Positions 17,718 through 37,083 of a stretch of DNA of 64,000 nt are shown here, piece after piece. Under the pieces are notes generated by a model, which saw nothing but the letters and a program-made list of their open reading frames with translations, ran no database searches and was not told the DNA's origin. Source of the stretch: Calcarisporiella thermophila CBS 279.70 (Eukaryota > Fungi > Calcarisporiellomycota); contig NW_027192200.1 of assembly GCF_041956535.1 (NCBI RefSeq), positions 453,477-517,476 on the forward strand. Reading direction: 5' to 3'. Each line of letters starts with the position of its first letter. The stretch's first letter is position 1. A program made the translations under genes and the position numbers.

Positions 17718-20450
17718 TTAGCCATACTTGATCTCCACATCGCCTTCCGCTGGAGCGTCCAAGTCCACGTACGATTGGATTTGTCGAGGGTCCGAGCGAG
17801 CGCCACCCGGAGGCGGTGGCAATGACTCCTGCGACGCGCGTAGCCCGCCTCGGCCCGACAGTCTCTGATACGGATGGTAGCGCCCGCCGCCTAATCCTCT
17901 GTGATGGGATAGCATTGGTATAGGGCCAAATCCTCCAGCGCCCCTTACGCCCCCAGCAGCACCGGGTGGCTGGGGAGGCCAGCCTGCTTCGCCGGGAGCA
18001 GGGAAGGCGGGGAATCCGATCCGTGGGATGCCCTCGAACGGCATGAAGGCTATTCCAGTCGGAGGGAGACCCCCTGGAGCCGCACCATTGGGTATTGCAA
18101 ACTCCATTCCGGGAGGGATCATTCCTGGCGGGAACATTGGAGGGAAGAATGGAATAGGAGGAGCGGTGCCGGTTGGCTGGGTCATATGGCCGGGGTCCCG
18201 GATGAAATTGTTGAGAAAATCGATCGAATCCTCGTGCTCCTTGACCTTCTCGGCATGCTTCAGATTGAGATGTTTGCGCACGAATTCTGGCCCACGGAAC
18301 GGCTTATTGCAGATCTTGCAGCGGAACTTGCCTTGTTCCCGGTCATCAATATTCTCGGTAAGGAAGCGATCCATTTCCCTTTAGAGTAAAAAAAAAAAAA
18401 GGGGGGGGGGGTAAAGATAAGCTCTTTGTGTGCATGTTTAAAAATTTAGCCATAAAGGGACCACGTACTTTTCTTTGTTCTTGCCTCCATATTTCTCCAA
18501 GTCCAAATCTTTTGGATCCTTGAGCAACAGGTCGAGTTTAAGGTCCAGATTCTTTGCCCATTGTGCGGCTACATTCCACCGAGGAGAGGGTTGAAGTGAA
18601 TCCATGCCAAATTTAGATAAAGAGGGGCAACTTACTATTTTGCTGCTTCCCGGTGTTGGAGGAGCTTCCGGGGGGAACGCGGTAATGCCTTGGACATTTG
18701 CGACGGAACTCTTCGACAGAATCTGCATCGAATGCGTCATAATAACAGAATAAATGGACTTGCCTCATATAATTTAAGAACATGTCCAGTTTAATTTTAA
18801 TCTGTGCCAAATAGAATAAGAGAGAGCGATTAGTCAACGAGTCGCCTCGACCTTCCCCGGATGGTAATCCAACACTCACTCTAGCCATTTCCGTCTCTTC
18901 CTCGGCCCTACTAAGACCCTCTTCTCCCTCCTCTCCCTCTCTCGATTCCGGTCTGGGCTTTCGCTCTAAAATGTGTGCAACTCGTTCCCTGACCAGCTCG
19001 GTGCCCTTGATCTCTTCGCCAAGTTGCCGGTCAAGCACTTGGGCCAGCTGCTCCGCCTGCTCGCAGTCATGTCTTAGGCGCTCAAGCGTACACGTAATGT
19101 CGGGAGCTACGCGGGGCCGCAACACGGAGGGCGCAGTTGGTATTGCGACGTGGAGCTGGAAATCATCAATCTAACGCAAACATGGGAGGGGGAGAGGTTA
19201 GTGAAGGGGAATAATGACCGCCGTACAAAGAACCACCTTTTGGCCATCAATCTCGGACACGGCCTTCTTCAGATCAGTGCCCTCCTTGAATTGTATCCAC
19301 CCGATGCGATGGAACTTCTTGGTGAACATGGGTTCTGATAACGCCACGCCCTCAAAGCCCTCCACCTTTTTGCATAGCTAAACGAGTGAAAGAGACGTCA
19401 GAGCTATTCGAGCTATACCACGACGGAAAAACCACACCAAATACCTCGATGAGTTTATTTTTCTCTACATTTGGAGACACCGATTTGATCACAAGATGGT
19501 TTTTCAATGGATTTACATCGGGTTTCTTTTCGCCTGAGCTCGCTTCTGTGGCTGCGTCTACACCTTCTTCTGCAGTACCCTCGCCCTTGGCCTCTTCCTC
19601 TCCTTCTTCTTTTGTGTCCTGTTTATCCTCGCCCTCTTTCCGTGCCTCACCTCCTTCAGGTTTAGTCTCCGTCCCGGGCTGATCAAAACAAACCTCATCA
19701 TGCTCGCCCTGCATCAACTCTTCCACAAATCTTGTGTAGAGCCGTTTTCGGAGGGCACGTACCTCCTCTAAGCGCTGCACGCATACGCCTGGAGCGTACT
19801 TCTCCCGAAACCAAGCCTCCTCTTTGTGCTCTTCAAAGAAACGCACGGCCTGGCGAGCAGCGTAGTCTTCCTTATAATCGCCGTAGCGTTGTCGTAGATC
19901 ATCTTCTTCAAATGAACGCGAAGGATTTTCCGCACGCAGATATTCGCAAAACTGCTTGAAGCTAACGAGGTAGTCGAGTTTGTATGGGTCAGGGTGACCG
20001 GATCGATTACGTGAAAACGAGGATTGGCCAGAGGAGGTGCTCTCTCTTGATCCGAATTCGGGGCGATTGCCATACCGAGGAGCAGGTGAATAACCATCTC
20101 GCTCATAATTGGGAATATAATGATCGCCATCACTGGGTGGGGCTCCCCGCCTTGGAGACACGGAACGACGGTACTTGTGCCGTCGATCTGTTGTCAGAGA
20201 AAGAAGAAAATAAAACGACCATCAATTTAGTACAGGGTGGAGCAAAAATTTGCCGAAAATGCTTCTACTGACCACGCTCATCTGGTGAAAGACTGCGATC
20301 ACGTTTGGAAGCAGGTCCCTCATAATGCCGATCTTCATCGCGCCTCTCAAATCTATCACTTCGACGACCTCCCCGTTCGCGCTCACGCTCCCTACGGAAA
20401 CGATCACGAGAGCCTGATTCCTCGTCGGAAGGGTAACGATCGTCGAGCAT
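17718..20450 (-). CDS. SRRT: Serrate/Ars2 RNA effector, multi-exon (start uncertain)
   Basis: SFKQF..Y..YK....FFEEHKEEAWFREKY (DUF3546), RRM-like segment, YMRQVHLFCYY, C2H2 finger CKICNKPFRGPEFVRKHLNLKH, and C-terminal DPRQIQSYVDLDAP. Confidence 0.92.
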
Positions 20451-30128: not shown

Positions 30129-32395
30129 ATGTCGGAATCGCAGCAACAGAAGACTGCCGAATACTCGCATTTCTCATTCGAAAAACCTGAGGCCGATTCG
30201 CAGGGACTTGCCACCGACCCCAATGTCGCTGGCCAGGCTCCTGCAAGGCAGTTCCTACACAGCCTTTGCTCACGCAAGCCTATCGACCGCATCAGGAATG
30301 AGACGGGAGCGGAGAGGAATACTCTTAAGCGTGACCTGAATGCTCTTGACCTCACGTCCATTGGCATCGCAAACGTAATAGGGACTGGGATATTCATTAT
30401 TAGTGGTACGAAATCTGAGCCTTATCTTGCCCATTGGATTTTATTTCCCCTTCTTCCTGCTGTTTTGCTCAATCTTGTATCCGTGTGACGGGCTGTAGGA
30501 CACGCCGCGGCTGAGAATTCGGGGCCAGCCATAGTCATTTCCTTTCTCATCGCCGGTTTCGCCTGCATCTTTGTCGCTATGAGCTACAGCGAGATGGCGT
30601 GTATGATCCCGGTGGCAGGCAGTGCCTATACTTATGCATATGCGACCCTGGGCGAGGGAATTGCGTGGATTATTGGTAGGCGTTGATGATTAGCTAGAAA
30701 GAACCGTTGGTCACCAAGCATGTGCTAATTTTGGCATGTCCACGTTAGGATGGGATTTAATGATCGAGTATTTGTAAGTAGAGAACAGTGAAAAGCATAC
30801 CCGACGAGAGCGAGGCTAAATCTGAACTCTCGCTGGTAGATTTGGAGTGTCCACTGTGGCCGTCGGATGGAGTCAATACTTTGCAAAGTTTATTGAATCG
30901 TTTGGAGTCCATGTAATGCACATGTCCGCATAGGGAAAACCCCCCACCTCTCTCTTAACACCCAGTACCCCATTTATAGGTAGATCACCGGTTTACCGAC
31001 CCCCCTCTCTCGTGGGACGAGAAGCTGCAGCAATTCAATCGTACTGAGGGATACATTAACATACCCGGGATTGTGATTGTGGCGACGTTGACTACCATCC
31101 TCATCCTGGGGATCCGTCAATCCAAGGTTTTCATCAACACCATTGTAATCATTAAACTCACCGTTATAGTGCTCTTCATCTGCACCGCCGCAAAGTGGGT
31201 GAATCCTAGTAATTTTCAGGTGAGCGGGTGGTTTGGGAGGGTTGATCTTTCATATCTTCCAAATCGACGTGATCTAAGCTTCTCCATTTGATGATCAATA
31301 CAGCCATTTGTCCCGCCGAATGAAGGTGGAGACTGGTAGGAGCCCTATATTCCAGCCGGATGACCCTCATATCTCCAATTCTAATTTTTTAATAGGCGAC
31401 ATTTCGGCGTTTCAGGCATCTTTGCGGCGGCGTCCATTGTCATTTTCTCCTATCTCGGATTCGATGCCGTTTCCACTGCGGGGCAGGAGGCCAGAAATCC
31501 GCAACGAGACATCCCCATCGGCATTTGCATGTCACTGTTCATTTCCACCGTCCTCTACATTTTGACCTCGTTGATTATGAACGGCGTGGTTCCATACTAC
31601 AAGTATAAAAATGACCCGGCACCCATTGCAACGGCCACCGCGGCAACCGGAATGCCCTGGCTAACGGTACTGGAGAAGATAAAGAAAATGACGGATTTTT
31701 TGTCATTTCTAATTGATCTTAATGAATGCACTTTGCACCCGCGTTCCCCTATTGGATAGATTGTTGTCTCGTTGGGCGCTCTCGCGGGCATCACCAGCAC
31801 TATGACGATTGGCCTTCTTGCCCAGTCCCGTATCTTCTATGCCATGGCGCATGATGGCCTTCTTCCACGAGTATTCGCGCGCGTCCATCCCCGCTTTCGT
31901 ACGCCTTGGGTTGCTACCCTGGTCAGCGGATTGGTTTCTGCAGCGTTGGGCGCCACTCTTCCCATCGATCTTCTTGGGAACATGACCAGCGTTGGTACAC
32001 TTATGGCCTTTATTTTCGTCCACATAGGGATCATTGTGCTTCGCTTTACGAAACCGGACTTGCCACGCCGATTTAAAATACCGGGGCCTAAAGGAACGTG
32101 GATCATCTTCCCTCTGATGGGGATTGTCAGCTCAATCATACTGATCGCCCTTGCGGATAGGGCCACTATTTACCGAGTATTCGCGTGGATGTACGTGTCT
32201 TCTACCCCCCTCTCCCTCTCCCTCCTGTATCAAGCTGCACCTAGCTAACGACTGCATCTCTTCTTTGCTTTCTACTCCAGGGGACTGGGCTTGATCGTTT
32301 ATGGCGTCTACGGCTATCGTCACAGCAGGCTCCGCAACCCTCAGAACGACTTGAGGCTTCGAGAGCTGGAGAGCATGGCCATTCCAAAACTTTAA
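30129..32395 (+). CDS. APC-superfamily amino acid permease (cationic amino acid transporter, CAT type), many exons
   Basis: LKRDLNALDLTSIGIANVIGTGIF, GPAIVISF, YSEMACMIPVAGSAYTYAY, IAWIIGWDL, FSYLGFDAVST.GQEARNP, RIFYAMAHDGLLP. Confidence 0.92.
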
Positions 32396-33517
32396 TCTAA
32401 TGAATCTTCTTGGATTATTTATTTTCTTTATCTAATTCTGCTGTAGACATTTCTCATTTTCGAGTAATAATATGTAGCTAGTTTTTGTCTCTTGATGCGA
32501 AAAGTCGAACTGGTTCTTTCATCAGCTTCTATCATCACGCCTCCTCTGAGGGTGCCAGCTGATACAATTCAATAAAAGGAATAGGACAAGGGAATAGAGC
32601 GTTATTTTTGAGATTTGTTCCACGAACGAACCACATGGCTTAATCCACCTCTCGTTGCTCGACTAATATTAGTGGACCACTAGGAATCATTATCCTACTC
32701 TCTTAGCCCAGCGGGGATATTGAACTATACTACCACGGGTCTAGTATTCACCAAGAAATCCTTAAGTGTAGCGGTTTGAATTGACACCATTCCTTTCGCC
32801 GTGGCTAGCCAGGCTCTCCGCCCTAGTAGAACGCCGACATCTTCTAAGCCGGCTTCCACCCAGAAACCGTACTTTCTAATTTTATATTATAACCATATCG
32901 AAATCAAGTGGCGGTCGCATACAATCTCGATGATTATCGCCTCTTTGAACAGGCGAGCATAGGGTTGGCTTGGCAAGCGCCTAGAGCGCTTGAGAGCCCA
33001 CTTCGTAGGACAGCAATCGAGAAATTCCTTACAAATTTAGGGGGGGTGGTCCGCATAATGGTTTCGGGCCAGATATTTTTAAATGTATTTGTGGCGGGAA
33101 TTGGGGTGGGCAAATGCAAGGATCCATTGAGAATTGATTAGAGTTCTGCGCCTCGTTTAGAAAACGTGGTCTAAGATTCCGAAGCACCGAATCGAGTAAT
33201 TTGCTTTAGCCTAATCGGTTTATCTATTCTCATTATCACCGGCTTCCTTTCATTTAACGATGCCCAAAAATCTTTGATATCCGCCATGCGTACAACCCAT
33301 GTGTAAGTTTCTGACTAAAGGCTAGAGGGGTGTGGAGAGCGCGAATTAAACCGGCTTGGCAAGCGTGAAAAAAATTACCGCTCGAGTCCGATACCGAAAA
33401 TTCCGAGGACGGCACAAGCCTCGCGAGGAAGTGAATAAATGGGAAACAGCCCGTTGCGAAAAGAGAACCTGTTTTTAGTTTTCTTCTCTTTGTTTCTCCA
33501 TCCAGCGCCTAGCCAAA

Positions 33518-33607
33518 ATGAATGAACGCAACACTTGCAAACAATGCGGCCAAGGACCCTTTGCTTCCTGGCAAGAATTCCTCAACCACCGCTGCGTGCC
33601 GCTCTAA
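33518..33607 (+). CDS. 29-aa CCHC zinc-finger-like microprotein, copy 1 (MNERNTCKQCGQGPFASWQEFLNHRCVPL)
   Basis: AAAATG start context, TAA stop; paralog at 34109 differs mostly at synonymous sites. Confidence 0.75.
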   Translation: MNERNTCKQCGQGPFASWQEFLNHRCVPL

Positions 33608-34108
33608 CCACCCGGAGTTGTTTCAGCGGTCTCCCTCTGATTACCTCCAACGCGTGGCCACTGTCCCGGTCCCTAAGGGACCTGCCTTCTTCCCTCTGCT
33701 GCCGCCTCTGCCATTTGTACGCGGCCCAAATGAGAGAAGCCCGCCCAAAACCACTCGTGTCCTTTGCTTATTCAGCCATTTTGCTACCGAAGAAGTTGGC
33801 TAACAATAAATTTTGTAACACGCTTCCCTCACGTATACCCGTGATTTCGGCAAAAACCAATCCGATCCATTTGTAGAGGATGGAAGAATATTCCAGCATG
33901 TTTCAGAAATCGAACAAATATGGCAATCTGACACCAAGGGGCCAAGCGTTTCTGGCACCAAGATTCTTTGGAGAGAGAAATTTTAAAAACTCAACTTGTT
34001 CTGTTTTTCCATCCTCTTCTCTCCCGTTCGCCCAGAGACGCTTGCTGACTCTTTCTGGAGTACACTTGTTCTTCCATTCACGTTCCATCTTTGCATTCCT
34101 CAACCATA

Positions 34109-34198
34109 ATGAATGAGCGCAACACCTGTAAAATATGCGGGCAAGGTCCCTTTGATAGCTGGCAGAGCTTCCTGAACCACCGCTGCGAGCCTCCTTAG
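34109..34198 (+). CDS. 29-aa CCHC zinc-finger-like microprotein, copy 2 (MNERNTCKICGQGPFDSWQSFLNHRCEPP)
   Basis: ATAATG start context, TAG stop; 24/29 aa identical to copy 1, with the same length and stop position. Confidence 0.75.
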   Translation: MNERNTCKICGQGPFDSWQSFLNHRCEPP

Positions 34199-35865
34199 CA
34201 ACGCTTTCACCTTGCCTCCTCTGCTAGCAGCTCACTCGTAAGCGAGCGAGCTTGAACCCATACTAAATAGCCTATGCGATCACATACACTTGATCGACCA
34301 AAAGTAGACGCGATGCTCAACAGAACTAAGAGAAAGAGAATCGACTTGACCTTCCCTCTACCTATTTTTTTTATTGAGCTCGAATTGTCTATCAAATATT
34401 GTTTTATTTCCTCTGTTTTTTACGGCTGTCAGGCAGACTCCCTTGTGTAGTGCTGCGTACTAAAGCAACAGCCTCAAAATCATGAATAAATATTTACCCT
34501 TCTTTATACGAATTGAATATGAAAATATAAACCTAAAAGAATTCATTTTTCATTCAACTTTTGAAGTTCTTTCAATTGAAATAGGTGAAGGATTAACCTA
34601 TACAGTCTACACAAGTGGGGCCAGTTGAGTTGAGAGGCCGCTAACTCTCAGTGCATCTGCCGGATCGAGAGCGCGCGTATGCCTTTTGGATTCATATTAC
34701 CATCCATTATAAATAGGAGAAGTATTTTTGAAATCTAATATCGTATTTCTAAAAGGAAGCTGATGCGATGGATGAGACACAGTATTGCCATTTATATTTG
34801 GCTATATGGTCCATGTTCCCCGCCTTGGTTTATTATATTCCCTTCAGAAGCCAGAGTTATGAAGCTATATTTCAATCGAATGTCTTCTAAGTGCTGTAAA
34901 TCTCTAAACTCGATCCTAACCCAATTTCTGCAGCTTCCCCCAGATACACTTTGCCAGGTAGGTTAATCCTCTTTCGCTGGATTCCAAGTCTTTTTGAGCA
35001 ACAATTAATCAGTAGTTTTAATTTCAGACCTGAATTCTGCATCTCTCTCCATGGCATTTAAACACATTGCCACTTTACCACCTTTTATTTTCGCTAGATT
35101 CAAAATCAATGGAGCGTAAAATAAACCATCAGAACAATCAACCATAAAGCCTCTTCCAAAATAAACTTTTTCCTTCATACCTTATAATATACGGTTTGCC
35201 GAAAAATTGTTGCAGTAATATGACGCATTATTTATGTGAACTAAAACAATGAATAACTACCGTAAAAGAATGGGCGGAAATATTATTGAAAATATCTTTT
35301 TCGATCTACACTGCTTTTAGGAATACGTGCAAGACATGTTTAAAGCAGAGAAACTAAAACCCGGGGGCGAATTTGATATAAGAGTTGAAATACATTTTTT
35401 AGGCTTAGTCTAAAGGTTAGCAAGCATTATGCAAGTATGCCGGAACGGACGCGTGCTATATATAATGCAAAGAGAGGACACACTGGGTATTAGTGTACTA
35501 GAGGACATTTCACGATTTGTGAAAACGGTATACAAAAATGTCCTCTTCTAAAACAGCATTTCGACACTTCTCAATTTTAACCCCCCGGCATTATAGTTTT
35601 TCTTTTTTAAACATTGGCGTCATGTAATAATAAAACTTTTACAAGCTCAGTGTCGTATATATTTTCAACAATATTCTCCTCCATATTCTACAGGGGGTTT
35701 GCTGGGATATTCAAATTATAGGTAAAAAATTATCAAAATAGGCAACCGTCTTTCCGTCAACTATATATAATCTGGTTCACCTAGCTCTCTCTTTCTTCCC
35801 CACCCTTCTTATTCAATTTTGGCATATTACAAACTTTATCTTGATTTGAATTTTGCACATCCATA

Positions 35866-36231
35866 ATGAAATCAACTGCCACTCTCATAGCTTTTATGCT
35901 GTTATATTTTGCCACGTCCTCTCAAGCAAAGGAACATGAGGCTATACGGCCCATTGTCGGCCGCTTAAAAAGGCACTCATGCGAAATTACTCCTCAATCC
36001 GTCACCCGCGTCCTCGCCGTTGCAGATGCTGTAGTTTGCATAGAAGAGAATGAACCTGTTCCTCCCGCAGTTGCAGCTGCAGCCTTGAAAGGATCTCCCA
36101 ACTGCGACAGCATTAAAAAAAGAGTAAGAGCAGCGATAGCTGAAACTGGACAATTGAAAGAAAGAGCAATTGCCTGTGAACCGGATATCGTTGTCTATGT
36201 TACACCCTTAAAAAAATCCCAATCTCGCTAA
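35866..36231 (+). CDS. Small secreted protein, 121 aa, 4 Cys
   Basis: Signal peptide MKSTATLIAFMLLYFATSSQA; intronless; TATATATAA about 100 bp upstream (35762). Confidence 0.7.
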   Translation: MKSTATLIAFMLLYFATSSQAKEHEAIRPIVGRLKRHSCEITPQSVTRVLAVADAVVCIEENEPVPPAVAAAALKGSPNCDSIKKRVRAAIAETGQLKERAIACEPDIVVYVTPLKKSQSR

Positions 36232-37083
36232 TTGCAGAATGTATCAATAATATTTCACATCATTGATATGCAATATTATTGATAGATTATGATATGATAT
36301 GAATTAATTCCCACTCAAAATCTTTCATTAATTTGCTGCTCAGATAACCATTTCTCTTTTTACTTAAATAAAGACTTATCTGGTGGTGTGAACAGCCCTT
36401 TAATGGAGAAAACTCGGCCTTCTGGGGGGGAGGGGTGGCTTTTGCTTATTATTGTTCTTGACTGAGGTATCCCTCAACAAGATATTGTTTGCACAAGAAG
36501 GAGTATAAACTAATAAATTAAGCATAAAATGGTATACACACACATAAAAAAGCGTATGCGATTCATGAGTTATAAAGCTTACTATTTTTGACAAACAGGA
36601 ATTTGATCCACTTCCAACTCATTTGGTGTGACTATCGTATTCTTCACCTCCCCGAGCGCATCCGTTATGTCATATATAACTTTCTGCAATATTTCTCGTC
36701 TAGTCTCAAATAGTTGCGTAATCCGCTGTAGTGTCTGGTTGAGCAAATGGAACGATTTTACTCAACTAGTATTTATATCGAATTTTTAGAAAATATTATA
36801 AACCCAGCCAGACTGAACATGGTTTGAGTTGGATGAGGTGTTATCCTTCACTTTCTGGCCCACAGGAGTAGCCCCCACTCATTAACATGGAAGAATATGC
36901 TGATATAGGATTCCTTCCAAAGAAGTTGCAATAATCCCTTTAAGAAATTCTTATTCCAATAATATATACACTTTTCAAAAGAAAATAGCGATCTAGAGTG
37001 ATTACAAAAATGAATTTCAAAATTAGAAATGAATAAAAAAAACTCAAGGCAAGCAATGGAATATATCCGTTATACACTCGTAT

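Follow-up and report, generated by a model that had tools for sequence, protein, structure and literature searches.

A nine-member family of minimal zinc-finger-like microprotein genes under purifying selection in Calcarisporiella thermophila

Introduction

Two open reading frames of 29 codons each, arranged in tandem and alike in sequence, raise the question of whether frames this short are genes in their own right, and if so, what kind of protein they would encode. The pair lies in a 64,000-nucleotide stretch of the genome of Calcarisporiella thermophila, a heat-loving fungus; we refer to this whole stretch as the window. The original prediction held that the two frames, here named c1 and c2, are unannotated and belong to a family of minimal genes for zinc-finger microproteins on which purifying selection acts, and that their products might act as metal sensors, as metal buffers or as interaction modules. 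Here we ask how far the family extends, whether its members are selected as proteins, what fold they are predicted to adopt and which mode of action fits best.

Results

We re-read and re-translated the two open frames. The c1 frame occupies 33518..33607 (+ strand) and consists of 29 codons followed by TAA; its tandem paralogue c2, 591 nt downstream, occupies 34109..34198 (+ strand) and consists of 29 codons followed by TAG. Each is preceded by a pyrimidine-rich leader, a putative 5' UTR, with an A at -3 (33470..33517 for c1 and 34040..34108 for c2, both + strand). Candidate poly(A) signals with the sequence AATAAA are present 198 nt past the c1 stop (33805..33810, + strand) and 287 nt past the c2 stop (34485..34490, + strand); the first of these would weakly suggest separate c1 and c2 transcripts. 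The pair is housed in a gap of about 3.5 kb bounded by window positions 31772-32248 (+) and 35866-36231 (+). According to the ORF listing, the long open frames on one side of the gap belong to a putative amino-acid permease gene, and a 121-codon ORF lies on the other side. A search of positions 31000-37000 against Rfam returned no RNA family. Elsewhere in the window, a 220-codon open frame at 17718-18380 (-) carries an ordinary C-x2-C-x12-H-x5-H finger and is unrelated to the micro-gene family.

Codon-wise comparison of c1 and c2 over 30 positions found 15 identical codons, nine synonymous differences, including a serine encoded by TCC in one frame and AGC in the other, five replacements, and the TAA/TAG difference at the same stop position. 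Altogether 20 of 90 bases differ. The excess of synonymous change (pS 0.56, pN 0.14) was significant when synonymous and replacement changes were compared (p-value = 8e-4, Fisher test), and the distribution of differences by codon position (3, 6, 10) was not significant by itself (p-value = 0.14). A repeat finder run over 3 kb detected a single 99-nt direct repeat with 78% identity and a spacing of 591 nt, and neither ungapped alignment nor BLAST found similarity between c1 and c2 beyond the ORF borders within 1 kb on each side. The coordinates and translations originally reported for the pair, together with its leaders, its codon differences and the restriction of similarity to the ORFs, were thus all reproduced.

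To find further copies, we searched the C. thermophila assembly (28.2 Mb, 116 contigs) in six frames with c1 as the query, which yielded five further close copies and a distant one on other contigs. A search of the assembly with a family profile added two more copies that were split or extended. Protein, profile and DNA-pattern searches together gave nine members on eight loci, each encoding a protein of 28-40 residues, and c1 itself matched the family profile with an E-value of about 1e-20. A degenerate DNA pattern for F-x-S-W-x2-F-L-x-H had 14 matches in the genome, namely the nine members and five chance sites, compared with three matches for a reversed-pattern control. Besides the tandem pair, the members are c3 (G000:C4:1128092, +), c4 (C16:393627, -), c5 (C12:240919, +), c6 (C21:494996, +), c7 (G000:C14:494587-494676, -), c8 (C4:51494, +), which is annotated and contains an intron, and c9 (C29:132337, +), which has a putative intron and entered the searches as its first exon. 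Two features of the surroundings are recorded here: a UQ_con match lies 2.2 kb downstream of c6, and the stretches flanking c8 read as N near 48.5-50.4 kb and 52.3-53.7 kb of G000:C4 (L037, L067).

Spliced c8 is identical in sequence to KAL1923288.1, a 28-aa entry named 'hypothetical protein VTP21DRAFT_8268 [Calcarisporiella thermophila]', and it is the only annotated member of the nine. A collection of 15 billion proteins did not contain the exact c1, c2, c6 and c7 sequences. The description "unannotated" applies to c1 and c2 and to almost all of the family, c8 being annotated.

If the members are genes, their limits should be conserved as well as their sequences. A homologous ATG starts all nine members, and upstream of it the loci show no relation in sequence. 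The stop codon occupies the same position in c1-c6 and differs by a few residues in c7-c9. In c4, the homologous ATG is the first ATG within a 146-codon open frame. Over all member pairs, pS ranged from 0.50 to 0.96, which is near saturation, and pN from 0.07 to 0.32; selection is read here from comparisons among paralogues, since no orthologue outside C. thermophila was found. The bias was also significant between c3 and c4 (p-value = 2e-10, Fisher test for synonymous versus replacement changes). Among c1-c6, 23 of 29 third positions are variable, compared with eight first and 11 second positions. GC3 was 0.67 against a flank GC of 0.33-0.50, with a strong preference for C-ending codons. No similarity was detected between the flanks of any two loci within 1 kb on either side.

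Introns provide further evidence for coding. The c8 intron is 78 nt long (GTATGT...TAG, phase 0) and follows codon 14; the family alignment resumes exactly past it, and retention of the intron would truncate the finger. Without splicing, the c9 frame reads on to a stop. We propose a putative 65-nt phase-0 intron (GTACTT...TAG) after the His-Lys codons of c9, the removal of which would restore H-x-C and a C-x-x-P-V-V tail like that of c7. Two members, c8 and c9, would thus need splicing to complete the finger.

Because synonymous sites are near saturation, the gene copies must be old. The tandem pair is no exception: c1 is no closer to c2 than either is to c3, c4 or c6, so the pair is not the product of a recent duplication. 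As far as sequence comparison goes, we conclude that these are duplicates of long standing, retained through selection on the protein, with conserved ORF limits. The predicted family of minimal zinc-finger microprotein genes, with purifying selection acting on it, is upheld by its nine members, of which two contain introns, and by their synonymous and third-position variability.

The alignment defines a common pattern C-x2-C-x12/13-H-x-C with F-x-S-W-x2-F-L-x-H, in which 12 residues are invariant (in c1 numbering N5, C7, K8, C10, G11, F15, S17, W18, F21, L22, H24 and C26). The spacing is canonical in c7-c9 (C-x2-C-x12-H-x-C), and c1-c6 have an extra residue in the G-Q-G-P loop between the knuckle and the Phe (C-x2-C-x13-H-x-C). 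The fourth ligand position is a Cys at H+2 in all nine members, in c9 after the putative splice. The zinc ligands of c1 are proposed to be C7, C10, H24 and C26. Against the classical ligand pattern C-x2-4-C-x12-H-x3-5-H, the family agrees in its first three ligands, the spacer being x12 in c7-c9 and x13 in c1-c6, and departs at the fourth.

Profile comparisons place the family near C2H2 fingers. The family profile matched PDB sequences of PRDM9 fingers, with a summed E-value of 7e-7 to which each finger contributed weakly, and of ZFP568, with the Pro aligned as an insertion. The best Pfam scores were 14.5-18.9 bits against cut-offs of 25.2-27, below the gathering cut-off of PF00096 and PF13894. 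Of 12 sequences in the alignment, comprising the nine from the fungus and three repeats of a bacterial protein, P0002, described below, seven gave sub-threshold zf-C2H2_4 matches. The match of c2 was weak and below the cut-off (14.5 bits), and c1 matched no Pfam family.

Structure prediction agrees with the profiles. The AlphaFold model of c7 had a mean pLDDT of 80.9, with a bridge at residues 5/12 and a helix at 16-20. The c1 model, which included one genomic codon before the ATG, had a mean pLDDT of 81.7 and a helix over W18-L22 (19-23 in model numbering). The models contain no metal. In Foldseek searches, all 49 matches of c7 and the single match of c1 were C2H2 or CCHC fingers, with an rmsd of 0.6-2 A over 16-22 residues; all E-values were above 1, because the queries are only about 30 residues long. 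The nearest ESM Atlas clusters were C2H2 proteins of 31-40 residues. The predictions thus contain the beta-hairpin and helix of a finger with an aromatic/aliphatic core. The original prediction had likened c1 and c2 to the beta-beta-alpha finger, and the C2H2 profile matches and AlphaFold models back this parallel. Taken together, the models and profile matches, individually weak in score, are consistent with a C2H2-like finger of the classical beta-beta-alpha type in which a Cys two residues past the His supplies the last ligand. By the score cut-off and by its lack of a final H-x3-5-H, the family falls outside Pfam zf-C2H2, and we describe it as C2H2-like with an altered fourth ligand.

What might such a protein do? 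We conclude that c1 and c2 are probably intact, independent members of the nine-gene family, each specifying a free-standing zinc-finger protein that may serve as a protein-binding adaptor or competitor. The gene and the finger are the firmer part of this explanation, and we hold them with good to high confidence; the more specific proposal, in which the Trp/Leu face of the helix, with paralogue-specific neighbours, lets a zinc-stabilised mini-domain bind a protein, is tentative. In the overall explanation, the protein would be made and would bind zinc through the two knuckle Cys (C-x2-C), the His that closes the short helix and the Cys two residues on, so that H-x-C would replace the usual H-x3-5-H of classical fingers. 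The working surface would consist of the invariant Ser-Trp at the helix start and the Leu beside the core Phe, and the variable positions 16, 19, 20, 23 and 27 of c1 would tune specificity between paralogues. The proteins would then act as small adaptors or competitors.

Residues can be placed on the finger helix by relying on established finger geometry. In classical numbering, S17 would be -1, the helix cap, W18 would be +1, F21 would be +4 in the core and L22 would be +5, with the variable residues mapping to -2, +2, +3 and +6. The encoded proteins have a net charge of 0 to +2 and a pI of 6.5-8.7. DNA-binding fingers have a charge far from this range. Because the net charge is so low, a protein partner would be likelier than DNA or RNA, and charge and conservation together point to protein as the likeliest type of partner. 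The idea of an interaction module, raised in the original prediction for the family, is compatible with these features.

The other role originally suggested was that of metal sensors or buffers, to which we add redox-active C-x2-C peptides. Such a role would suit the four conserved ligands of metal type within about 29 residues and the presence of several gene copies, and metal or redox stress is plausible in a thermophile. However, the capacity of a peptide of about 29 residues is one site, and mere metal binding needs neither the Ser-Trp, which is invariant and exposed, nor the helix positions specific to each paralogue. The proteins have three to four Cys per 28-30 residues, and their conserved Phe, Trp and Leu fit a folded finger core and are atypical of metallothioneins. 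Metallothionein was rejected as a candidate class, which is Cys-clustered and aromatic-poor, as two Phe and one Trp are invariant in the family. The upstream sequences gave no sign of metal response either: no ZRE, MRE or three-unit HSE was found in the nine upstream regions of 500-600 nt, and these regions shared no significant motif, the best 8-mer occurring in five of nine compared with four in shuffles. We consider this reading unlikely.

A further possibility is that the ORFs are exons, upstream ORFs or downstream ORFs of larger genes, with the act of translation regulating a neighbour. Two loci lend themselves to it: an aldehyde dehydrogenase gene of the same orientation follows c7 at a distance of about 300 nt, and c4 lies inside its 146-codon open frame. 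That frame, however, contains no ATG ahead of the homologous one and matches nothing in Pfam, and throughout the family it is the homologous ATG and stops within a few codons of one another that are kept, with unconserved sequence before the ATG. The genes downstream of c3 and c5 (for an MFS transporter and an isocitrate dehydrogenase) converge on them, so neither member can be a uORF. Among the nearest neighbours, seven families unrelated to one another are represented, none of them recurrent: a CBM19 protein, an MFS transporter, a FYRC protein, isocitrate dehydrogenase, aldehyde dehydrogenase, PIGO/PIGG and an amino-acid permease. The only annotated member, c8, is modelled as a stand-alone protein of 28 residues, and selection on amino-acid sequence is untypical of uORFs that act through translation alone. 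The explanation is improbable for the family. For c7 only, a uORF or bicistronic arrangement is conceivable (L036 7146-7676 (-)).

We give little credence to the idea that the genes encode precursors of CaaX-prenylated peptide pheromones, or of any other peptide that is processed or secreted. Six members, c1-c6, do end in a Cys followed by exactly three residues, and their size and multi-copy arrangement are like those of fungal lipopeptide pheromone genes. Yet the Cys is off the -4 position in c7, c8 and c9, and five of the six terminate in Pro, which also occurs at the second 'a' position. A Pro at the terminus or at the second 'a' makes a poor CaaX context. Moreover, conservation extends over the entire finger and is not confined to a short mature peptide, and the proteins have neither a signal peptide nor a dibasic processing site. 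With a Cys at -4 in only six of nine members, we rejected the assignment to CaaX pheromone precursors.

Least probable is that these multiple, dispersed copies derive from a transposon or a decayed multi-finger gene, as fragments preserved merely by recent copying, since every one of the nine retains its start and stop codons, the copies are old, their flanks have no common sequence within 1 kb at any two loci, and the F-x-S-W-x2-F-L-x-H signature occurs at no other genomic place, so that no parent multi-finger gene exists.

We return to stand-alone finger genes and to how common they are in this genome. A six-frame scan of the assembly with zf-C2H2_4 found 150 fingers, 22 of them in open frames of 80 codons or fewer. 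About ten of 17 inspected appear to be further stand-alone CCHH one-finger ORFs of 28-45 residues with the pattern C-x2-C-x12-H-x3-4-H; in this partial census, such candidates number at least 10. Loci in this set (L049-L061) include G000:C2:198635(+), C2:146343(-), C3:1342250(-), C20:443783(+), C23:60826(+), C2:196962(-), C32:200523(-), C17:376524(-) and C4:847302(+). Paralogue groups are present among them, namely one pair of 40 residues and one trio with a Q-L-R-Y-H helix, and none of ten checked was found in the 15-billion-protein collection. It is possible, though we would not yet favor it, that C. thermophila has a large and nearly unannotated layer of one-finger microproteins, made up of the H-x-C family and several CCHH families, that act as diffusible single-domain regulators.

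Discussion

The family offers unusually clean comparative evidence for a eukaryotic microprotein: nine old paralogues with conserved ORF limits and coding introns. It documents, on a C2H2-like finger, an H-x-C ending, whose spacing is unusual where a finger helix ends. Routine annotation drops genes under about 30 codons, and eight of the nine members are missing from it (the exact sequences looked up being c1, c2, c6 and c7), which argues for micro-gene re-annotation of early-diverging fungi. If the proteins are made, they would be a tractable system for the role of a lone zinc finger in the cell, and with a domain of 3.3 kDa that can be synthesised, the chemistry is directly accessible.

Searches for relatives outside the genome returned few matches. 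An exhaustive profile search of 1.84 billion representatives recovered c8 (E-value 1e-7), a protein from Eubacteriales (E-value 1e-6) and multi-finger proteins, and a word-index protein search had no match. A metagenome scan with back-translated patterns gave 49 pattern matches, none of them confirmed, and a strict DNA pattern gave 10 loci, all of them chance low-complexity frames without a start codon. This absence says little about other fungi, because micro-ORFs are rarely annotated and this assembly is the only fungal genome searched as DNA. A described family of fungal one-finger microproteins was not found in the literature, and the word 'zinc' is absent from a review of the fungal 'hidden genome' (PMC11413187).

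The Eubacteriales protein, MDD3336358.1 (P0002, from a MAG), which among the 1.84 billion was the sole match of any strength from outside the family, is like the family in having three tandem C-x2-C-x12-H-x-C repeats with a G after the second Cys. These repeats span residues 196-285 with 30 residues each and pass zf-C2H2_4 (40.7 bits). In contrast to the family, it is a bacterial protein of 314 residues, its N-terminal part comprises a hydrophobic leader and a large domain, and it lacks the Ser-Trp. Its likeness to the family may be convergence.

With classical C2H2 fingers (zf-C2H2 and zf-C2H2_4), the family shares the C-x2-C, the Phe, the F-x5-F-x2-H core and a predicted short helix. It differs from them in having a Cys at H+2 as the last ligand rather than a His at H+3 to H+5, in having a finger that is the whole protein and not the unit of an array, in its near-neutral charge and, for six members, in a 13-residue spacer with an inserted Pro.

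The CCHC variants of the finger, such as those of FOG/U-shaped (PF25445) and the NEMO and UBZ4-type fingers (PF18439), resemble the family in having a Cys in place of the last His. Single fingers of these variants act as protein-binding modules, which for the family we only infer. Structures of U-shaped finger 9 were among the weak Foldseek matches, and weak Pfam matches to CCHC families had E-values of 0.04-0.06. The variants differ from the family in their H-x3-5-C ending and in being embedded in large proteins, and the similarity of the family to them is below any threshold. As a class assignment, UBZ (PF18439) was rejected: only exon 1 of c9 matches it (E-value 0.064, 13.4 bits against a cut-off of 25.6), and the final spacing differs.

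The closest parallel in concept comes from the archaeon Haloferax volcanii, which has many stand-alone, one-domain zinc-binding proteins of less than 70 residues that have largely been overlooked (PMC6562870, PMC11241148). Besides being archaeal, these micro-proteins differ from the family in having two C(P)XCG knuckles, zinc-ribbon-like with four Cys, and another fold, and the two groups have no sequence relation. What the C(P)XCG proteins and the fungal family have in common, by analogy only, is the concept of a single small zinc-binding domain as a whole protein and a C-x2-C-G knuckle (PMC6562870, PMC11241148). If the layer of one-finger microproteins in C. thermophila is real, it would be a eukaryotic counterpart of the haloarchaeal zinc-finger micro-proteome.
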